Sequence record: OP589283.1
Length of the DNA: 64,000 bases
Direction: 5' to 3' (one strand)
The position numbers were made by a program, and so were the translations under genes. The notes beneath the pieces were generated by a model. The model made no database searches and had not been told where the DNA came from. It saw only the letters and a list, made by a program, of their open reading frames with translations. This document shows positions 18,179 through 58,480 of this stretch, one piece after another. Numbering within the stretch: the first letter of the stretch is position 1; every line of letters begins with the position of its first letter.

Positions 18179-18727
18179 ATGAAATACAATATTTATGTTT
18201 ATTTGGAAGACGTAGCAATAAACTGGTTACTCAGAATAAACGAAGGATTGAAAGTAGCGACGGAATTAAAAGTTCCCCATACTCTATCTACGTTCTTTGC
18301 TAACGGTGACAGAAACCTATTAATAAAGAAAGCATTTTCTACTCCTAGTTTATACTTTTACGGTATCCCTTTAACCAATTCAACTCAGCAATTGATAAAG
18401 GGCATGAACGCCGAAGATTACATCAACTACAAAATAGTCATGTTAAGTAGCGAAGCTGAGTCAAAACTTACGTGGCTTAAAGAAACGTTTAACATCCCAA
18501 AGAAGGATGTTGTTTTTATTCCATCTGACCTCGAAATAACAGAATTAATAGAAGAGAACAGTATATTTATTCTGAATGAACCGGAACTAACCAAAGTAAT
18601 AACTGATGCTAACGGTTATGTTGCGGGTTCATTTAATTCAACTTTTACAAAAGAAGATACACTATGGTTGTTACATAAGTTAAATGAGTACACTACAAAG
18701 AAGGAACCGCCCTGTGGAAATTTATAA
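18179..18727 (+). CDS. degenerate paralog of the HAD nucleotidase
   Basis: same layout (IYVYLEDVAINW; KLTWLKETFNI; SIFILNE) but catalytic DxD and DD missing. Confidence 0.55.
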   Translation: MKYNIYVYLEDVAINWLLRINEGLKVATELKVPHTLSTFFANGDRNLLIKKAFSTPSLYFYGIPLTNSTQQLIKGMNAEDYINYKIVMLSSEAESKLTWLKETFNIPKKDVVFIPSDLEITELIEENSIFILNEPELTKVITDANGYVAGSFNSTFTKEDTLWLLHKLNEYTTKKEPPCGNL

Positions 18728-19772
18728 AGAAACGCTCAGAGAGATTATTAAAAATGGTAATCAAATGCACAACAAACGCACTGGCATTACTTGTTATAAT
18801 GCCTTTGGCGTTGGAATCATGTATGACACTGGGGATAAATCTCCTATGCCAACCATCAAGGAAGGTTATTTTACCGGTGCAAAAGTTGAACTAGCGTGGA
18901 TATTGAAAGGGTTAACCAACACTGATTACCTCCATCAACACAAAGTTCACTTTTGGGATAAATGGCGTATTGTGGGTAATAAACCTCGCTCCGTTGAAGA
19001 CGTGGTTTACCTATATGAACGTCGTCATGGTAAAGGAAGTGTGGCTAAAAAGTTAGGGGATATAGAAGGTATTGATTTCAAAGAACTTCTTGTCCTGCTA
19101 GGAATGTTAAACGGGCCAGTGTTATCTCATTATTACGATGACCGAGACCAAATGGTTGACGAAATCCAGTGTGGTGACTTAGGGCCCGTTTATGGTAAAA
19201 TGCTGCGGGAGTTCCCTAATCCGGACGGCACTACAACTGACCAGTTGAAATTGTTAATCGATGGTTTGATTAGTAATCCATCTAGTCGTCGTCATGTTGT
19301 AAGCCTGTGGTGTCCTTTCTATTTACCAGACGAATCGATTTCTCCACAAGAAAACGTATTACGTGGTAAAATGGCATTGGCACCTTGTCACTTTATGTGG
19401 ACATTCCATGTAGAAGACAATCATCCTAAAGACCTTATGGAAGAACGTTATACACTGAACCTGCATTTTAATATGCGGAGTAACGATTATGCGGTAGGTA
19501 ATCCAGTGAACGTTGTTTTCTATGATTTACTGTTAGCGTTAGTTGCGCAAACAGTTGGGATGAAGAAAGGGAAGTTGTGGTTTACCGGTACTAACGTACA
19601 CGTTTACAGCGACCAGCTTTTAGAAGCTAAAATATTATTGGGTCGTGATCCCCTCACATTACCAACTTTAGTGTTGGATAAAAAAGCAACTGTGTTTAAC
19701 TTTGAACCGCATATGGCGACGCTTGAAAATTACAAGCATCGTGGTAAAGTCAGTATTAAAGTAGCAAAGTAG
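18714..19772 (+). CDS. thyA: thymidylate synthase
   Basis: ELAWILKG, DLGPVYG, SRRHVVSLW, ALAPCH, RSND, NVHVY motifs; GTG 18714 has AAGGA RBS. Confidence 0.92.
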   Translation: MEIYKETLREIIKNGNQMHNKRTGITCYNAFGVGIMYDTGDKSPMPTIKEGYFTGAKVELAWILKGLTNTDYLHQHKVHFWDKWRIVGNKPRSVEDVVYLYERRHGKGSVAKKLGDIEGIDFKELLVLLGMLNGPVLSHYYDDRDQMVDEIQCGDLGPVYGKMLREFPNPDGTTTDQLKLLIDGLISNPSSRRHVVSLWCPFYLPDESISPQENVLRGKMALAPCHFMWTFHVEDNHPKDLMEERYTLNLHFNMRSNDYAVGNPVNVVFYDLLLALVAQTVGMKKGKLWFTGTNVHVYSDQLLEAKILLGRDPLTLPTLVLDKKATVFNFEPHMATLENYKHRGKVSIKVAK

Positions 19773-19781
19773 CTATTATAT
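19773..19781 (+). promoter_or_regulatory. putative promoter CTATTATAT
   Basis: same 9-mer occurs at 31196 upstream of chimallin; lies immediately after the thyA stop. Confidence 0.45.
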
Positions 19782-19784
19782 TGT

Positions 19785-20315
19785 GAAGGAGTGGTTTTCG
19801 TAGGGTGAATCACTTGTTTACAGAGGGGGTGCTCCGACTCCCTCAATTATATGTACAATTCAGTTGTTTGCTCCCAACTTCACTGTGTTGTCAAATAGGG
19901 GGTTCCTGATGTGCGGTCACAAAATAGGTGTGCAGCGCGAATCGTCAGGAATAATACTGGGAGTGAGGAATTACGGTCGGCGAAAGCTCGCCTCTTACGT
20001 CGTCAGCCTGAAACGATGTCTTGACCACCTCACTCCCACCCCACCCATTCAGGAGGAGAGCAGTGACGAAAGTTTCCGACCTGCATAGATGCGCACAGAC
20101 ATTTCTACTCGCTCTCCTCCGAATACCTCTCGTGAATTTATTAACCCGTAGTGTAGAACTCTTACTGACACACAGCTAACTCCTGACATGGGCTGTTTTT
20201 CTTTTAATGTCGGTTTTACACTACGGTTTAATGAGTTTATGTTTATCACCTTTACTAAACTCATTAGTGGTGTTGGCGCACCACTTGCTTTTGCATGTGA
20301 CGTGAACAGCTGGTA
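19785..20315 (+). ncRNA. large structured non-coding RNA of unknown class
   Basis: at least 8 helices including long-range 19861-19871/20302-20312 and 11-14-bp stems; G-U wobbles favour the + strand; promoter motif upstream, terminator downstream. Confidence 0.7.
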
Positions 20316-20326
20316 TTTCCTTTTAT

Positions 20327-20369
20327 CCCTTACTCTGCTCCTTAATTGGGGTGGAGTAAGGGTTTTTTT
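20327..20369 (+). terminator. intrinsic terminator
   Basis: CCCTTACTCTGCTCC / GGGGTGGAGTAAGGG then T7. Confidence 0.85.
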
Positions 20370-20439
20370 GATCTTTTTTATTTACCATAAAGACTATTAA
20401 ATGTACTTCTTTTATGATTACATTAAAAAGGAAATAAAA

Positions 20440-20796
20440 ATGAAAGCAAATCAGTACGGTGTTGGTAAAATCATCTTTAGTGATAATACTGAAAAAGAAA
20501 TTTCATGTGTTCAATTTGGAGATGGGTTTACACAGATAATGACTGTTGAATGGGATTCAAAAGATGTTGGATTAAAGCTCCAACACAACCCAGATGGCCC
20601 AGGTCCATTCTCAGAAAGAATCTTTTACAATGAGAACCATTTACCTGTTGCTTCAGAAAATCCTGAACTTTATTTACTTTTTGATAATGTCAAGTCGATC
20701 GACGCAATGATTGATTCTCTTAATTACATCAGAAAAACACTTGTTGAGAAAGAATCAGTAATAGAAGTCACCCCTGAAAAGGATGATGCACTATGA
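20440..20796 (+). CDS. hypothetical protein
   Basis: ORF 20401..20796; ATG 20440 has AAGGA RBS. Confidence 0.7.
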   Translation: MKANQYGVGKIIFSDNTEKEISCVQFGDGFTQIMTVEWDSKDVGLKLQHNPDGPGPFSERIFYNENHLPVASENPELYLLFDNVKSIDAMIDSLNYIRKTLVEKESVIEVTPEKDDAL

Positions 20797-21317
20797 GCAT
20801 CATTTGTTACAAAGCAGGTATCTTAGCCGCTGATGGAATAGAAACCCATCGTGACCTGATTAGCAGTCTAAACATTGAAAAAATTGTTAAGGCAGATAAA
20901 TCTAATAAATGGTCGATACTAGGTAAACGCATCGTTGCTTTTGCAGCTTGCGGTACCGTCACTGCTGATATCACAATGCGCAAATGTTTAACCGAAGGTA
21001 TTGGGTTGGAGAAACAATTCATTAACGTTTGTCATGATGAGTTTAGCGCACTCTGTATTGATGATTCAGGGAACAGTTACATTATTGACAGTATTATTGA
21101 TAACGGGGTACATAAATTAATCATCGTTGATGTAAAACCGCTTCAATTCCCAATTGCAATTGGGGTGGCTTCGGAAACCGCAAGAGCGCTCATGACGTCC
21201 AGTTTAGATTACAACGCGGTGGATGCAGTAAAGTTTAATTGCGAGAACTTTATCTCTTGTGGTGGTACAATTCAAGAAGTTAACATCGCCAAATTAGTAA
21301 AAGAACTTAACGACTAA
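20793..21317 (+). CDS. HslV/proteasome-beta-like Ntn-fold protein (Ser at position 2)
   Basis: M-SIICYKAGILAADG N-terminus, Lys in EKI, AIG motif late in the chain. Confidence 0.55.
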   Translation: MSIICYKAGILAADGIETHRDLISSLNIEKIVKADKSNKWSILGKRIVAFAACGTVTADITMRKCLTEGIGLEKQFINVCHDEFSALCIDDSGNSYIIDSIIDNGVHKLIIVDVKPLQFPIAIGVASETARALMTSSLDYNAVDAVKFNCENFISCGGTIQEVNIAKLVKELND

Positions 21318-21388: not shown

Positions 21389-21997
21389 ATGACAATCATT
21401 TGTGCTAAAGACGGGATTCTCTGTTCTGACGGTTATATCACATTTAATAACGGTATGCTTGAAAACGATCAATTTAATAAAATCCATACTCCAGAGCCCG
21501 GTGAAATTTGGACTGTAATGGGGAAACGGGTTTTAGCTTTTGGTTTAGCGGGTACGTTGAGTGTGGTAGACCCCTTTAAAGAATTATTGCGTAAAGGTAT
21601 TTACCACGACACTAAAACATTCCACGGCATTGGTGGAGCATCTATTCTTCTCTATACCGAAGATTTAGATTTAATTTATATTGGTGTAACTGATAAACAC
21701 GACCGTGAAGAAAGCTTGTTTCTCATTCACGAGCAATCTGGTGATTGCAGTGCCGTGGGTGTGGCTACAGCCGTCGCTAAAACGTACATGGTGACCGGTA
21801 AATCAGCCCGTAAAGCAGTTGAATTACTCGTTAAAACCAACGTTAGTTTAGGTGGTAAAATCTCCGAACTTAACGTTGCTGAGTGGAAAAAAGAATTGGC
21901 TGAAAAAGAAGCTGCCTTACCAAAAGACTACGTCTTCAAACCCAAGTTCCAATACTTGGCACCAAAAGTCGAACAACAACCTCAAAAACAAGCTTAA
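21389..21997 (+). CDS. HslV/proteasome-beta-like Ntn-fold protein (Thr at position 2)
   Basis: M-TIICAKDGILCSDG N-terminus; clear paralog of 20793..21317. Confidence 0.55.
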   Translation: MTIICAKDGILCSDGYITFNNGMLENDQFNKIHTPEPGEIWTVMGKRVLAFGLAGTLSVVDPFKELLRKGIYHDTKTFHGIGGASILLYTEDLDLIYIGVTDKHDREESLFLIHEQSGDCSAVGVATAVAKTYMVTGKSARKAVELLVKTNVSLGGKISELNVAEWKKELAEKEAALPKDYVFKPKFQYLAPKVEQQPQKQA

Positions 21998-22013
21998 CAT
22001 TAAGGATGGTAAA

Positions 22014-23003
22014 ATGAGTTTACGTTATTATTTCTGTGGTGGCGCTGGTATCAACATCGGTAAAGCAATTTGTCAATCTCCAAAGACCGCTATCAGCCCA
22101 GGTAATCGTGATGCTGTCTTTGTTGGGTTAGATTCCAGTGGTGCGAATGACCCAGAAGGTGCATTTGAAGTATGTCGCATGCCTTCGTTAAATGGTTCAG
22201 ATGAGCTTGCAAACGGCAGTGGTAAAGTTCAATCAACCAATTATCCAAAAGCTGTGCCGTTCATCAAAGACATGTTGTCTAAGCATGTTCCTGGTGCGTA
22301 TAACGTGGTGGTGTTCAGTACAAGTGGTGGTACTGGTGGTATGTTGGCTGTGGTATTGATTCGCGAGTTATTACAACTCAATCTTCCAGTAGTGGCGGTT
22401 TGTATCAGCGACCATACATCGGTTATTGAAATGAAAAACTCAGTAACAACACTACGTAACCTAGCCAATCAAACTTCGCCATCTCAGCTTGACCGTCCAA
22501 TTGCGTTTATTGAAGCCATCAACGACAATGAACACACCCGCGGGCAAGTAAACAAGCGTATCATCAATGACTTGAATCTTTTATCTATCTTCTTAAGTAA
22601 CAATAACGAAGAAGCAGATTATAAAGACATTTTGAACTTGCTTAACTATAATAAGGTGATTGGTGTGCCAGCATCACTTTCTCGCATTAAGTTCTTCAAT
22701 AAAGAAGATGCGATTAAATATGACGGCAAACCTCCTGTTGCTTTCTGTAGTCTATTTGATGCGCGTGATAATATCGTTCCTCGTTTTGCGGGTGGCGGTT
22801 ATCGTGTGACAGGTGTGTTTGGTGTTGAAAACAGTGTGATTGATGCTGAAGAAATGCACATGACACTTGACCACGGTGAAGCACTTGAAGAGCTAGAAGC
22901 AAAAATCAAAGCACTGGATAACCAACAAACAGCAAAAGTGTTGGCTTACTCTCGTGTGTCTGATTTTGGTGGTGGTGATTCTAACGGCATGAACTTTGAC
23001 TAA
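22014..23003 (+). CDS. phuZ: phage tubulin PhuZ/TubZ
   Basis: FCGGAGINIG and STSGGTGG tubulin motifs; acidic C-terminal tail; ATG 22014 with AAGGA RBS. Confidence 0.92.
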   Translation: MSLRYYFCGGAGINIGKAICQSPKTAISPGNRDAVFVGLDSSGANDPEGAFEVCRMPSLNGSDELANGSGKVQSTNYPKAVPFIKDMLSKHVPGAYNVVVFSTSGGTGGMLAVVLIRELLQLNLPVVAVCISDHTSVIEMKNSVTTLRNLANQTSPSQLDRPIAFIEAINDNEHTRGQVNKRIINDLNLLSIFLSNNNEEADYKDILNLLNYNKVIGVPASLSRIKFFNKEDAIKYDGKPPVAFCSLFDARDNIVPRFAGGGYRVTGVFGVENSVIDAEEMHMTLDHGEALEELEAKIKALDNQQTAKVLAYSRVSDFGGGDSNGMNFD

Positions 23004-31195: not shown

Positions 31196-31289
31196 CTATT
31201 ATATGTAGAAACAAAACAACAGGACCCTACCTGTTATAGGGTTATGTGTGCTGTTTCAATTTTCATAGAATTTCTGACGTCTATATTAC
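31196..31289 (+). promoter_or_regulatory. chimallin promoter region (CTATTATAT at 31196, CTATATTAC at 31281)
   Basis: two promoter-like motifs upstream of the ORF. Confidence 0.6.
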
Positions 31290-33473: not shown

Positions 33474-34919
33474 ATGCAATTTCCAGAATTAACTGATAGT
33501 AATCGCCTCGCTATTGAAGCGCTCACTAAAATCAGTGTGGAAAGTTTAGATCCAACCAGTCGTTATCAGGCATTTGCGAAAGGAATGAACTTAGCTGAAA
33601 ACTTTGATTACTTCCAATCGTTATACCCTGATTTTGAAGACTACAATTTTTTACATGACAGTTGTCCTCATCAGCAAATTTATTTAAATGACTTTGACTT
33701 TAATTTAGAAACTGACCGAGAACATCTCGCACAATTAATGCGGCTCGAATTTAAAGGTAATACTTTTGAGACCATTGCAAGTTGTGGTTGTTCTACTGGT
33801 GGGTTACGTGGCAACTACTTATTAGGTAGCGGTAGAGTTTGCCCGCGTTGCGGTAACGAGGTTGAACGTTTCTTAGATAAGGGTAATCAATCCAAACTGT
33901 GGTTAAAAACTCCTGAAGGAGTGGCTAAGTTTATCAATATCGGGGTGTACAACAATTTATTGACCAATATTAAAGTCAGTAAAACAGGCCCGGTGTGTTT
34001 ACCTCAATACTTTATGTCGAGTAAGTATCGCCGTAAACTACAGAAAGAAAAAATTGGGAGTGTGCAGTTAGTTGAACAAATCCTCAATGACTTAGATATT
34101 AAGAAAGAAGATGTGTGTTTAAATACGTTTGTAGAACGTTATGACGACATTATGGAATTCTTATTGAATGGTCCAGGGTTACGCACTTATACCAAAATAG
34201 GTGTAAGAGCACCCGCTTATTACGAGATTTATAAACACTCTCGTGATGTTGTTTTTAGTGACTATTTGAAAGTACCTAATCGTCAAAGCACCATTCTGGA
34301 AAATTCAGGTCGAAATGTTTACGCAACCAAAAATCAATTAGAAGTTAACCGACTGATTATTGATATTGCGGACACCAAACGGTCTGATGATTTCTACGCG
34401 CTTAATGCTAAAGATATTCGCCACAACAATGATGTGGTGGGTAACTCATTGGTTGAATTAAGTGAGATTCTGAATGGTAAAATCAGTAAGTCTCATTTAT
34501 TTGGTAAATACCAGTTAAGCCGTCACCATGTGAGTAGTGGTAGTATCCCGTTTACTGGTCGTGCAATTATTGCAAGTGAAACGGGTATACTTGATAATAG
34601 CAAATTGATTATCCCTTGGCGGATGGCGTTAAACATTTGTTATTACCACATCTTTAACGCGTTTTACCGAGATGGATTGTCTCCTAAGCAAGCTGCTAAG
34701 AAATTTAACTTAGCGGGTTATGCTTTTGATGAAAAAATCTCCAAGATATTTGAACGGGTGGAACAAGAGTGTAAGTCAGCTATACAAGCTGGTCGTAACC
34801 CAAGTAACGAATACCTAAGTTTACGGGTGTTCTTTATGGTGGTTAACCGTTGTTTAGAGGATGAATCCATCCACATTCCAATTTTAGCTTGTGGTGAGTA
34901 CAACAGCGATTTCGACGGT
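33474..34919 (+). CDS. non-virion RNAP beta'-like subunit (phiKZ gp55-like), exon 1
   Basis: Zn motif SCGC...CPRC, GRAII, QAGRNP; ends YNSDFDG just before the intron. Confidence 0.85.
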
Positions 34920-35314
34920 AAACTACAACGATTGCCGTCGTTAAACTTCTCTAACTGCTGGAACGCCGTAAAGTTCATTTAACTACAACGTGACTGGAAA
35001 CGGTGAGCGTGAATGTGGTCGAAAGACAGAAAAAATAAATGAAATGACCTATGCTTAATATCCCTGTTTAGTTTAATGGGGTGCTAAGGGTATCATAATT
35101 GGTAATCAGCAACGAAGTCTATTCTTAGGAGTGGATGTGTTCAACGACTAGGTGGGTCAAAATCGTGACTCGAACGGGAAGTAAACTTTCAGGATGAAGG
35201 TTGAAAGATATAGTCTCAACCGGTATGAAAGTATCGGAGTAAGTTTTAGCCAACTTACGACAGTGTGACGTACTGTTTAAAAACTTTAGAGCAATCTAAA
35301 GAACAATGAAATTG
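34920..35314 (+). mobile_element. group I self-splicing intron, 395 nt, no endonuclease ORF
   Basis: IGS GCCGTCG (34934-40) pairs with exon CGACGGT giving U-G at the splice site; P4 TGCTG/CAGCA; R GTTCAACGACTA; S AAGATATAGTC; terminal G at 35314. Confidence 0.9.
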
Positions 35315-35494
35315 GATCAAATGTACGTAATGTTTTTACTGGATAATGAATCCAAGGCAAAAAGTTATGGTGCTTTAGGTCATCAACAAATGTTGGATAA
35401 AAACAAGTTATTTACGGTAGGTGGTTATGCAGCTCAAACCGCAACTAACTTGATGAATCTTAACACAATGATGATTAAGACAAAACTCAAGTAA
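35315..35494 (+). CDS. non-virion RNAP beta'-like subunit, exon 2
   Basis: starts GAT (Asp) and restores NSDFDGDQM; spliced product 541 aa. Confidence 0.85.
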   Translation, partial: DQMYVMFLLDNESKAKSYGALGHQQMLDKNKLFTVGGYAAQTATNLMNLNTMMIKTKLK

Positions 35495-57841: not shown

Positions 57842-57848
57842 TAAACCC

Positions 57849-57882
57849 AATTCCTCTTTTAGAGTTATCTAAAGGAGGAATT
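57849..57882 (+). terminator. intrinsic terminator
   Basis: AATTCCTCTTTTAGA / TCTAAAGGAGGAATT. Confidence 0.7.
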
Positions 57883-58155
57883 ATGTGTCTTATTTTTCTT
57901 AGGTAAAATCTATGAATGTTAATCACCACTATTTAAACGTAAACAAAAGAGAAATGTATATTCACAACATTTAAAGAAGAGTATTGGGGTAGACATAAAC
58001 CTCATAAATTAAGTTCTTAAGTAAATAAAGTTTTATTTTACCACGCAAGATAATTATATACATCTTGTTCTACGCAAACATGCTCTTCTCTAACTCTTTC
58101 TTTCATAGATTTTTCCATAAATTGGTAGTTCTTTTTATGGTGGTCTATGGGGGTT

Positions 58156-58189
58156 TGGGGGCAAGAAGTCCATGGGGGCAAGATGTCCA
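58156..58189. repeat. 17-bp tandem repeat inside a four-G-tract island
   Basis: TGGGGGCAAGAAGTCCA TGGGGGCAAGATGTCCA (1 mismatch); G-runs at 58149, 58157, 58174, 58193. Confidence 0.85.
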
Positions 58190-58480
58190 GTTGGGGCCCC
58201 CGGCCGAACTTTACTAAGTTATTAGAGATTTGATGTATATACTCTGTAACCCTTGATATGACTGAGTTTTATAAGATCAAAATTAAATAAGAAATAATGA
58301 ATATTTAGTTTATTTATTATTACAAAGTATATTAAAAGAGAGTTTACTTAACTATAGCCTGAAGAAAGAATTATTATTCATTAGAATGTATCTGATGGAT
58401 CATAATCACCTAAATTAGTGTAATTGAGAAAATAGATTACATTAATAAGCACTATTACCAAAATAGAAGGATTAACTATC

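Follow-up and report, generated by a model that had tools for sequence, protein, structure and literature searches.

The stretch of DNA considered here, a window of 64,000 nucleotides (nt), is 100% identical to Shewanella phage FishSpeaker (OP589283.1), and window coordinates are also the coordinates of the record. The FishSpeaker genome (203,356 bp; host S. oneidensis MR-1) carries genes for chimallin, the PhuZ tubulin and split multisubunit RNA polymerases, which identifies it as a nucleus-forming jumbo phage (chimallivirus). Between thyA (18714-19772) and a hypothetical gene (20440-20796), positions 19773-20439 are without annotation in OP589283.1. An initial annotation had placed in this gap an unclassified multi-domain RNA of ~0.55 kb on the + strand. 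This proposal was supported by the fold of the region, by compensatory changes and slow evolution, and by the lack of an open reading frame and of a matching Rfam family. Overall, the gap probably holds a separate gene on the + strand, for a structured noncoding RNA of ~510-585 nt that would act in trans through its fold.

The minimum free energy (MFE) obtained with RNAfold for the + strand of 19773-20375 was -226.6 kcal/mol, compared with -166.8 +/- 5.9 kcal/mol for dinucleotide shuffles (z -10.2), while the reverse complement gave a z-score of -5.6. Homologous sequences from uncultured relatives also folded strongly (z -12.0 for L011 and -7.3 for L147). Of all 300-nt segments of the 203-kb genome, the one richest in GC falls within the RNA region (0.51, against a genome mean of 0.39), in agreement with the earlier description of a GC-richer gap. 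The initial annotation had also argued from wobble pairs for the + strand, and among the consensus pairs G-U cells did outnumber A-C cells (83 vs 32), a count that is biased towards the + strand since the structure was predicted on that strand.

Homologues and conservation of the fold

Relatives were obtained by a ThyA protein search against 5.8 billion proteins, and a further search with the downstream 174-amino acid (aa) protein gave additional ones. The ThyA relatives (98, 82-83, 67, 58, 49 and 40% identity) were all found in public-run (Logan) assemblies. A gap of 0.5-0.7 kb was present 3' of thyA in L004/L005, L145, L006/L007 (with the fragment L008), L010, L011, L012 and L147, and homologous gaps were in this way recovered from six lineages of uncultured relatives. 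All of them were matched by nhmmer (E 1e-154 to 9e-14), which found nothing else in 1.16 Mb including the whole FishSpeaker genome. L147 was also found, at E 1.3e-9, by a covariance model of the 3' core that had been built without it.

In an alignment of seven sequences, the 121 consensus pairs were 87.4% paired, whereas only 42-49% were paired when the 3' partners were slid by 1-3 columns. Double compensatory changes were seen in 52 of the 121 pairs, against 7-20 in the slid controls, and none of 500 shuffles reached the observed pairing and double-change values. With alifold on nine sequences, double changes occurred in 34 of 62 pairs. The alignments thus show that the predicted fold has been conserved through compensatory changes, as expected of a structured noncoding RNA gene.

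Among FishSpeaker, L004 and L145 the RNA differs by 2.3-4.9%, compared with 9-18% at four-fold sites of the adjacent thyA, and in close relatives substitution in the RNA was 2-8 times slower than at these sites. The RNAs of these three phages vary at 33 positions, 24 of them unpaired and none within 20131-20288. By this comparison, purifying selection acts on the putative RNA and is strongest in its 158-nt 3' core. The conserved sequence blocks sit in G-U-rich helices and in loops.

Nearly all of the helices that had been proposed were reproduced by MFE or consensus folding. These are 19789-97/19807-15, 19823-30/19837-44, 19902-11/19943-52, 19958-68/20028-38 (with GGCGA/UCGCC inside), 20052-61/20111-20, 20146-58/20214-26, 20229-39/20256-66, 20267-73/20278-85 and the terminator stem 20327-41/20348-62, which is followed by T7. 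A long-range closing helix between 19861-71 and 20302-12 fared differently, for it can form in FishSpeaker but its 3' strand belongs to an insertion restricted to FishSpeaker, L004 and L145, and L004 has changes inside 20302-20312. As judged from the alignment, hairpin A and not this helix is the conserved 5' element. The parts of the unit are listed in table 1.

Table 1. Predicted parts of the RNA unit downstream of thyA, from 5' to 3', and sites of the rare motif in the FishSpeaker genome
Feature	Position	Strand	Remarks
P1, promoter-like motif CTATTATATTGT	19773-19784	+	immediately 3' of thyA stop; same place in every homologue
H1, 5' leader hairpin	19782-19822 (19782-87/19817-22 and 19789-97/19807-15)	+	MFE folds
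H2, GC-rich hairpin GAGGGGGU/ACUCCCUC, then AAUUAUAU	19823-19844	+	double changes in 6 of 7 pairs
P2, second promoter-like motif copy CAATTATATGTA	19844-19855	+	directly 5' of hairpin A
Hairpin A, CAAUUCAGU/ACUGUGUUG	19856-19890 (19856-64/19882-90)	+	88.9% paired; UA/GC/UG exchange at one pair
Domain 2, branched	19898-20044	+	closed by GGGGG (19898-902) with C-tract (20040-44)
Domain 3, hairpin domain GGAGGAGAGC/GCUCUCCUCC	20052-20120	+	variable; wholly absent from L006/L007
Domain 4, long helix B5 (20131-44):B6 (20228-41) and P4 (20146-58/20214-26)	20131-20241	+	apical region conserved
Alternative hairpin B6:B7, UAAUGAGUUUA/UAAACUCAUUA	20229-20266	+	excludes B5:B6
Hairpin E, GUGGUG-UUGGCG-CACCAC	20267-20285	+	100% paired; 3 double-change pairs
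3' strand GUGAACAGCUG	20302-20312	+	can pair with 19861-71; FishSpeaker, L004 and L145 only; insertion relative to other lineages
Intrinsic terminator, 15-bp stem, 6-nt loop, T7	20327-20369 (20327-41/20348-62)	+	found in every homologue
P3, related motif CTATTAAATGT	20394-20405	+	45 nt 5' of next gene; kept in L006, L007 and L011
WATTATAT sites	19774, 19845, 31197 (before chimallin), 58052 (unannotated 640-nt gap), 117984 (in gene)	+	

The degree of conservation differs from part to part. A hairpin occurs at the place of H1 in every lineage, with differing sequences. The loop of hairpin A, CUCCCAA (19871-19877), is the same in all sequences of the seven-sequence alignment and reads GUCCCAC in L147. 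Domain 2 contains a hairpin (19904-09/19946-51) and an 11-bp helix (19958-68/20028-38). Its closing pair changes from A-U to G-C in three sequences and one of its helices has five double-change pairs, while the sub-helices inside it are lineage-specific. Nine of the 13 pairs of P4 show double changes, and B5:B6 together with P4 forms up to 27 continuous pairs (in L012). The loop of hairpin E, UUGGCR, is unchanged wherever this hairpin occurs (it is missing in L147). The terminator stem is 100% paired, with double changes in 9 of its 15 pairs.

Beyond these lineages the RNA was not found. There is no gap after thyA in L014, L139 and L140 or in the Vibrio phages pVa-21 and pVp-JHP1101, and L013 (ThyA 58% identical) has only a motif, a hairpin and a terminator (~170 nt) at the place of the RNA. 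A blastn search (word size 11) against 50,697 phage records, including phiKZ-like phages, matched FishSpeaker alone, and protein-based, alignment-based and DNA-pattern scans of IMG/VR gave no relatives. A metagenome scan with a loose DNA pattern contained no homologue by nhmmer among the matches listed. In a genome collection, one DNA pattern was without matches and another had three chance matches. Going by these searches, the RNA family is confined to a small clade, and its locus behaves as a variable slot.

In L009 (ThyA 49%), thyA is followed by the same motif, a 415-nt structured RNA (L009:11134-11548, z -7.3) and a terminator. This RNA was detected neither by nhmmer nor by the covariance model and was not accepted as a homologue; it is an analogue or has diverged beyond recognition.

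L010 and L011 (L010:945-2618, L011:997-2675) differ at 24% of thyA nucleotides (56% of four-fold sites), yet their RNAs have 94% identity, which indicates that recombination took place at the border of the thyA stop and P1 and that the RNA can go with different thyA genes. The ThyA of pVa-21 (L002:4001-5356) has 451 aa and is ~100 aa longer than the FishSpeaker enzyme, and a tblastn search of FishSpeaker ThyA against pVa-21-like ThyA aligned 82-83% of the protein, in two pieces.

Coding capacity and known RNA classes

Open frames of 52-74 codons exist in the region, and AGGAGG at 20051-56 lies 6 nt before a GTG (20063) that begins a 38-codon frame (20063-20179). The earlier statement that no credible frame led by a ribosome-binding site (RBS) is present has to be qualified by this frame, although it is absent from the other lineages. 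That the region encodes one or more small proteins, for example from this frame, is hardly credible. The frame is not conserved, domain 3 being absent in L006/L007 and the start being missing in L010, L011 and L012, and the RBS-like bases are paired in the predicted fold. No Pfam or PHROG family matched the region. When homologous gaps were compared in translation, none of the six frames, on either strand, stood out from a uniformly weak similarity. The homologues have their longest open frames in different places, frames and strands, and the indels between them are not multiples of three. No reading frame is common to the homologues.

The region was compared with the 4227 families of Rfam 15, a set that includes ROOL, GOLLD, HEARO, OLE, raiA, 6S, RNase P, tmRNA, SRP, riboswitches, group I and group II introns and small ribozymes. 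Even at E <= 10 it gave nothing beyond chance-level matches far below gathering, and four homologues and L009 likewise had no meaningful match at this threshold, so that the description as unclassified stands. By ARAGORN, the 64-kb window is free of tRNA and tmRNA genes. Full-text literature searches returned no description of the RNA or of FishSpeaker. The comparative data support an RNA family that is new, though of the same broad kind as other large structured RNAs of phages.

A group I intron was also considered for the region and rejected, as thyA is complete with a normal C-terminus and a stop at 19772, and RF00028 was silent at the RNA region. The sole Rfam match at gathering in the window was a group I intron at 34868-35237 on the + strand (RF00028, 72.5 bits). 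It splits a gene for an 'RNA polymerase beta subunit', annotated as 33474-34982 and 35306-35494. Elsewhere in the FishSpeaker record, large unannotated gaps at 185217-185799 and 188990-189395 adjoin fragments of RNA polymerase beta subunit genes and a gene for an HNH endonuclease, and may hold more introns.

Predicted transcription signals

The 9-mer CTATTATAT at 19773 recurs at 31196, 158 nt upstream of chimallin; its presence 5' of that gene had been noted from the start. The underlying pattern WATTATAT has five sites in the 203-kb genome, all on the + strand (table 1), against an expectation of ~12 per 64 kb. The chimallin copy is located in a divergent intergenic region, after a gene on the opposite strand, and the chimallin promoter must therefore be there. 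Both motif positions downstream of thyA are retained in every homologue. The P1-position motif is also found in L009, and as ATTATATT in L013, while the P2 core ATTATAT is unchanged in all nine sequences (AATTATAT in eight, CATTATAT in L147).

Early promoters of jumbo phages are AT-rich, of ~10 nt, and centred near -10 (PMC7598289), and the chimallin gene of phiKZ has an early promoter of the AT-rich type (PMC8244752). Transcription of the FishSpeaker RNA would start at one or both copies of the rare motif c(T/A)ATTATAT(T)GT and would stop at the strong intrinsic terminator. As the motif also precedes chimallin, a phage RNA polymerase probably makes the RNA early and in large amounts. A naive k-mer count for a general promoter motif yielded nothing.

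Copies of the motif were also seen between genes in pVa-21, pVp-JHP1101 and L009. In pVa-21 (L002:534) and pVp-JHP1101 (L003:1740) it has the form CTATTATATAGT and lies ~160 nt 5' of small genes; in L009 a second motif-bearing gap of 594 nt (L009:1425-2019) has it at 1454. It may be a start signal common to a wider phage group. In FishSpeaker, the unannotated 640-nt gap 57842-58480 has AATTATAT at 58052, a moderately stable fold (z -4.6), and a GC-rich block with GGGGGCAAGA(A/T)GTCCA twice (~58150-58200). This gap may be a further noncoding transcription unit.

H2 resembles a terminator and may end transcripts from thyA or from P1. This bears on the view that there is no separate gene, and that the region is a cis-acting 3' untranslated region (UTR) of thyA, which stabilises or insulates the operon and blocks read-through into the PhuZ operon. 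Such a UTR would fit with a region that starts at the thyA stop codon, with the terminator-like character of both H2 and the final terminator, and with L013, which retains just the motif, hairpin and terminator there. A stabiliser or insulator, however, needs no co-varying multi-domain fold of 0.5 kb with invariant loops, nor would it call for a rare motif, shared with chimallin, that is present twice at the 5' end. The near-identical RNAs of L010 and L011 beside very different thyA genes also speak against it, and a thyA UTR is considered distinctly unlikely.

Tandem promoter-like motifs followed by a GC-rich block are known from transcript-primed origins such as those of T7 and ColE1. The same arrangement here, in a genome that carries group I introns, could suggest an element acting at the DNA level (replication origin, packaging site or cruciforms), or else what is left of an intron or mobile element. 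Both the wobble-pair asymmetry and the much stronger fold of the + strand favour a + strand RNA instead, the cumulative GC skew is flat at 20 kb, intron and ribozyme models had no match, thyA is intact, and there are no flanking repeats. An explanation of this type is very improbable.

Downstream of the terminator, P3 would mark the start of the next transcription unit. Two paralogous genes (20793-21317 and 21389-21997) lie between the RNA and PhuZ, and both of their products start with M(S/T)IIC...DG. The second is annotated as 'peptidase HslV family protein', and the pair is kept in all relatives.

The 3' core and possible functions of the RNA

Within the 3' core, the strand B6 has two partners. 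The helix B5:B6 is 97.6% paired with four double-change pairs, and the hairpin B6:B7 is 89.6% paired with three; B6 columns 122, 123 and 127 co-vary with both B5 and B7, in a small number of independent events. The clearest case is L147, in which B6 changes from UUAAU to CCGAU, B5 from AUUAA to ACCGG and B7 from AUUA to AUCG. With constrained folding the two states were 1.7-6.6 kcal/mol apart in all nine sequences. The earlier 11-bp helix 20229-39/20256-66 is thus one of two options, as the alternative pairing of 20228-41 with 20131-44 had been overlooked. A strand with two mutually exclusive, co-varying partners suggests a bistable module, in which the 3' core would toggle between the long helix B5:B6 and the hairpin B6:B7, each state leaving a different A/U-rich strand single.

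Riboswitches and other bistable switches likewise have a strand with two exclusive partners, both kept by compensatory changes, and close predicted energies. Unlike in these, no known aptamer was matched (Rfam) in the FishSpeaker RNA or its homologues, and as the alternative helices overlap neither the terminator nor a ribosome-binding site, an expression platform is not evident.

A shorter RNA without B5 would also account for both pairings of B6. It could arise if the transcript were a precursor of smaller regulatory RNAs, with RNase III cleaving in the 27-bp helix or RNase E cleaving at the A/U-rich strands. The 27 continuous pairs of B5:B6 and P4 in L012 would offer such a substrate. A possible 3' fragment (B6:B7, hairpin E and terminator) would be built like an Hfq-type small RNA, as the 3' end has A/U-rich single strands beside hairpins and a U-tailed terminator, and the known noncoding RNAs of phiKZ are short species derived from UTRs (PMC8545117, PMC10914365). 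Purifying selection and covariation, however, span the whole 0.5 kb and not the 3' end alone. A search of the phage genome gave no conserved complementary target, and elsewhere in it the conserved elements have no perfectly matching reverse complement. The start region of PhuZ (22012-22023, AAUGAGUUUA) is identical to 10 nt of B6 and thus complementary to B7; this match is lost in L006 and L147, shows no covariation and was dismissed as a coincidence. A precursor is regarded as unlikely.

ROOL and GOLLD (RF03087, RF01998) are noncoding RNAs of unknown function, of ~0.5-0.8 kb and with many helices, that are carried by phages or prophages and owe their recognition to covariation (10.1101/2024.12.08.627333). 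The initial annotation had compared the FishSpeaker RNA with them, which holds for size and phage carriage and does not extend to homology, as no sequence or structure match was found at E <= 10. The FishSpeaker RNA also differs in that its carrier, a jumbo phage of a gamma-proteobacterium, is strictly lytic and forms a nucleus, and in not lying beside tRNA genes (ARAGORN, 64-kb window).

The resemblance in size, multi-domain fold and phage carriage (10.1101/2024.12.08.627333) raises the question whether copies of the FishSpeaker RNA assemble by themselves into an RNA-only particle, as shown for ROOL and GOLLD, through contacts between their loops and helices. The loop CUCCCAA has a 4-nt complementarity with UUGGCR, L147 has neither loop in its conserved form, and the strands B5, B6 and B7 could pair between molecules. 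The loop complementarity is nevertheless just 4 nt and without compensatory change, whole domains are dispensable in some lineages, and homology to ROOL or GOLLD is lacking. Such a particle appears quite improbable.

Among chimalliviruses, phiKZ is known to produce noncoding RNAs (3'UTR_PHIKZ298, 5'UTR_p40 and other short 5'UTR species), some of them ended by a terminator; with a length of 70-200 nt and two stem-loops, they are UTR products of either processing or premature termination (PMC8545117, PMC10914365). A 2026 review mentions no larger chimallivirus noncoding RNA (PMC13282480). The FishSpeaker RNA shares with those of phiKZ that it is a noncoding RNA of a chimallivirus, and differs in its size of ~0.5 kb, its several domains and its own promoter-like motif. 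The pRNA of phi29, a phage-encoded RNA of 120-174 nt in small podophages, is made from an early-type promoter and acts via loop-loop contacts and protein binding. It is like the FishSpeaker RNA in being a structured RNA encoded by a phage, and unlike it in that the Rfam pRNA model had no match here.

The reading that we prefer is a stand-alone, trans-acting RNA gene. The initial annotation had offered scaffold, decoy, nucleus and packaging RNA as candidate roles. By analogy, the RNA would act through its shape, and its most likely role is that of a platform or decoy to which a host or phage protein binds; a protein partner would be favoured over antisense pairing. This view draws on the features left after the negative results for antisense targets and for an origin, namely the stable, GC-rich fold of several domains, the conserved blocks in loops and G-U-rich helices, the putative two-state 3' core, the chimallin-like candidate start signal, the turnover of domains and the narrow clade. 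The modular gain and loss of domains and the restriction to a small clade suggest that the role is accessory, possibly in host takeover or counter-defence, and not one in core replication. RNA-targeting immunity has been reported to reach nucleus-forming phages where DNA-targeting systems cannot. A bolder and rather doubtful version is that the RNA represents a new class of large phage RNAs made together with chimallin at the very start of infection, which as a switch, in a self-assembled form or in a catalytic form serve host takeover or the evasion of RNA-targeting immunity.

Several points weigh against the preferred reading. The binding platform is suggested by exclusion and analogy. The promoter role of the motif and the ends of the RNA are read from sequence signals, and with only five copies in the genome the motif cannot be the general early promoter of the phage. 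The family comes from only ~6 lineages, and the related phages L013, L014 and pVa-21 are without the RNA, which means that it is dispensable for this type of phage. The two pairings of B6 could instead reflect sequential folding, two transcripts or pairing between molecules.

If this reading is correct, the FishSpeaker RNA would be the first large multi-domain RNA gene in nucleus-forming jumbo phages, in which the noncoding RNAs reported so far are short and UTR-derived (PMC8545117, PMC10914365, PMC13282480), and it would bring one more family to the few large RNAs of bacteria and phages whose function is unknown. The doubly co-varying strand of the 3' core provides a clear, testable structural hypothesis, and as FishSpeaker has been cultured and has S. 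oneidensis MR-1 as its laboratory host, experiments are directly feasible. The rare motif would be a start signal common to this RNA and to chimallin, the gene of the nuclear shell.

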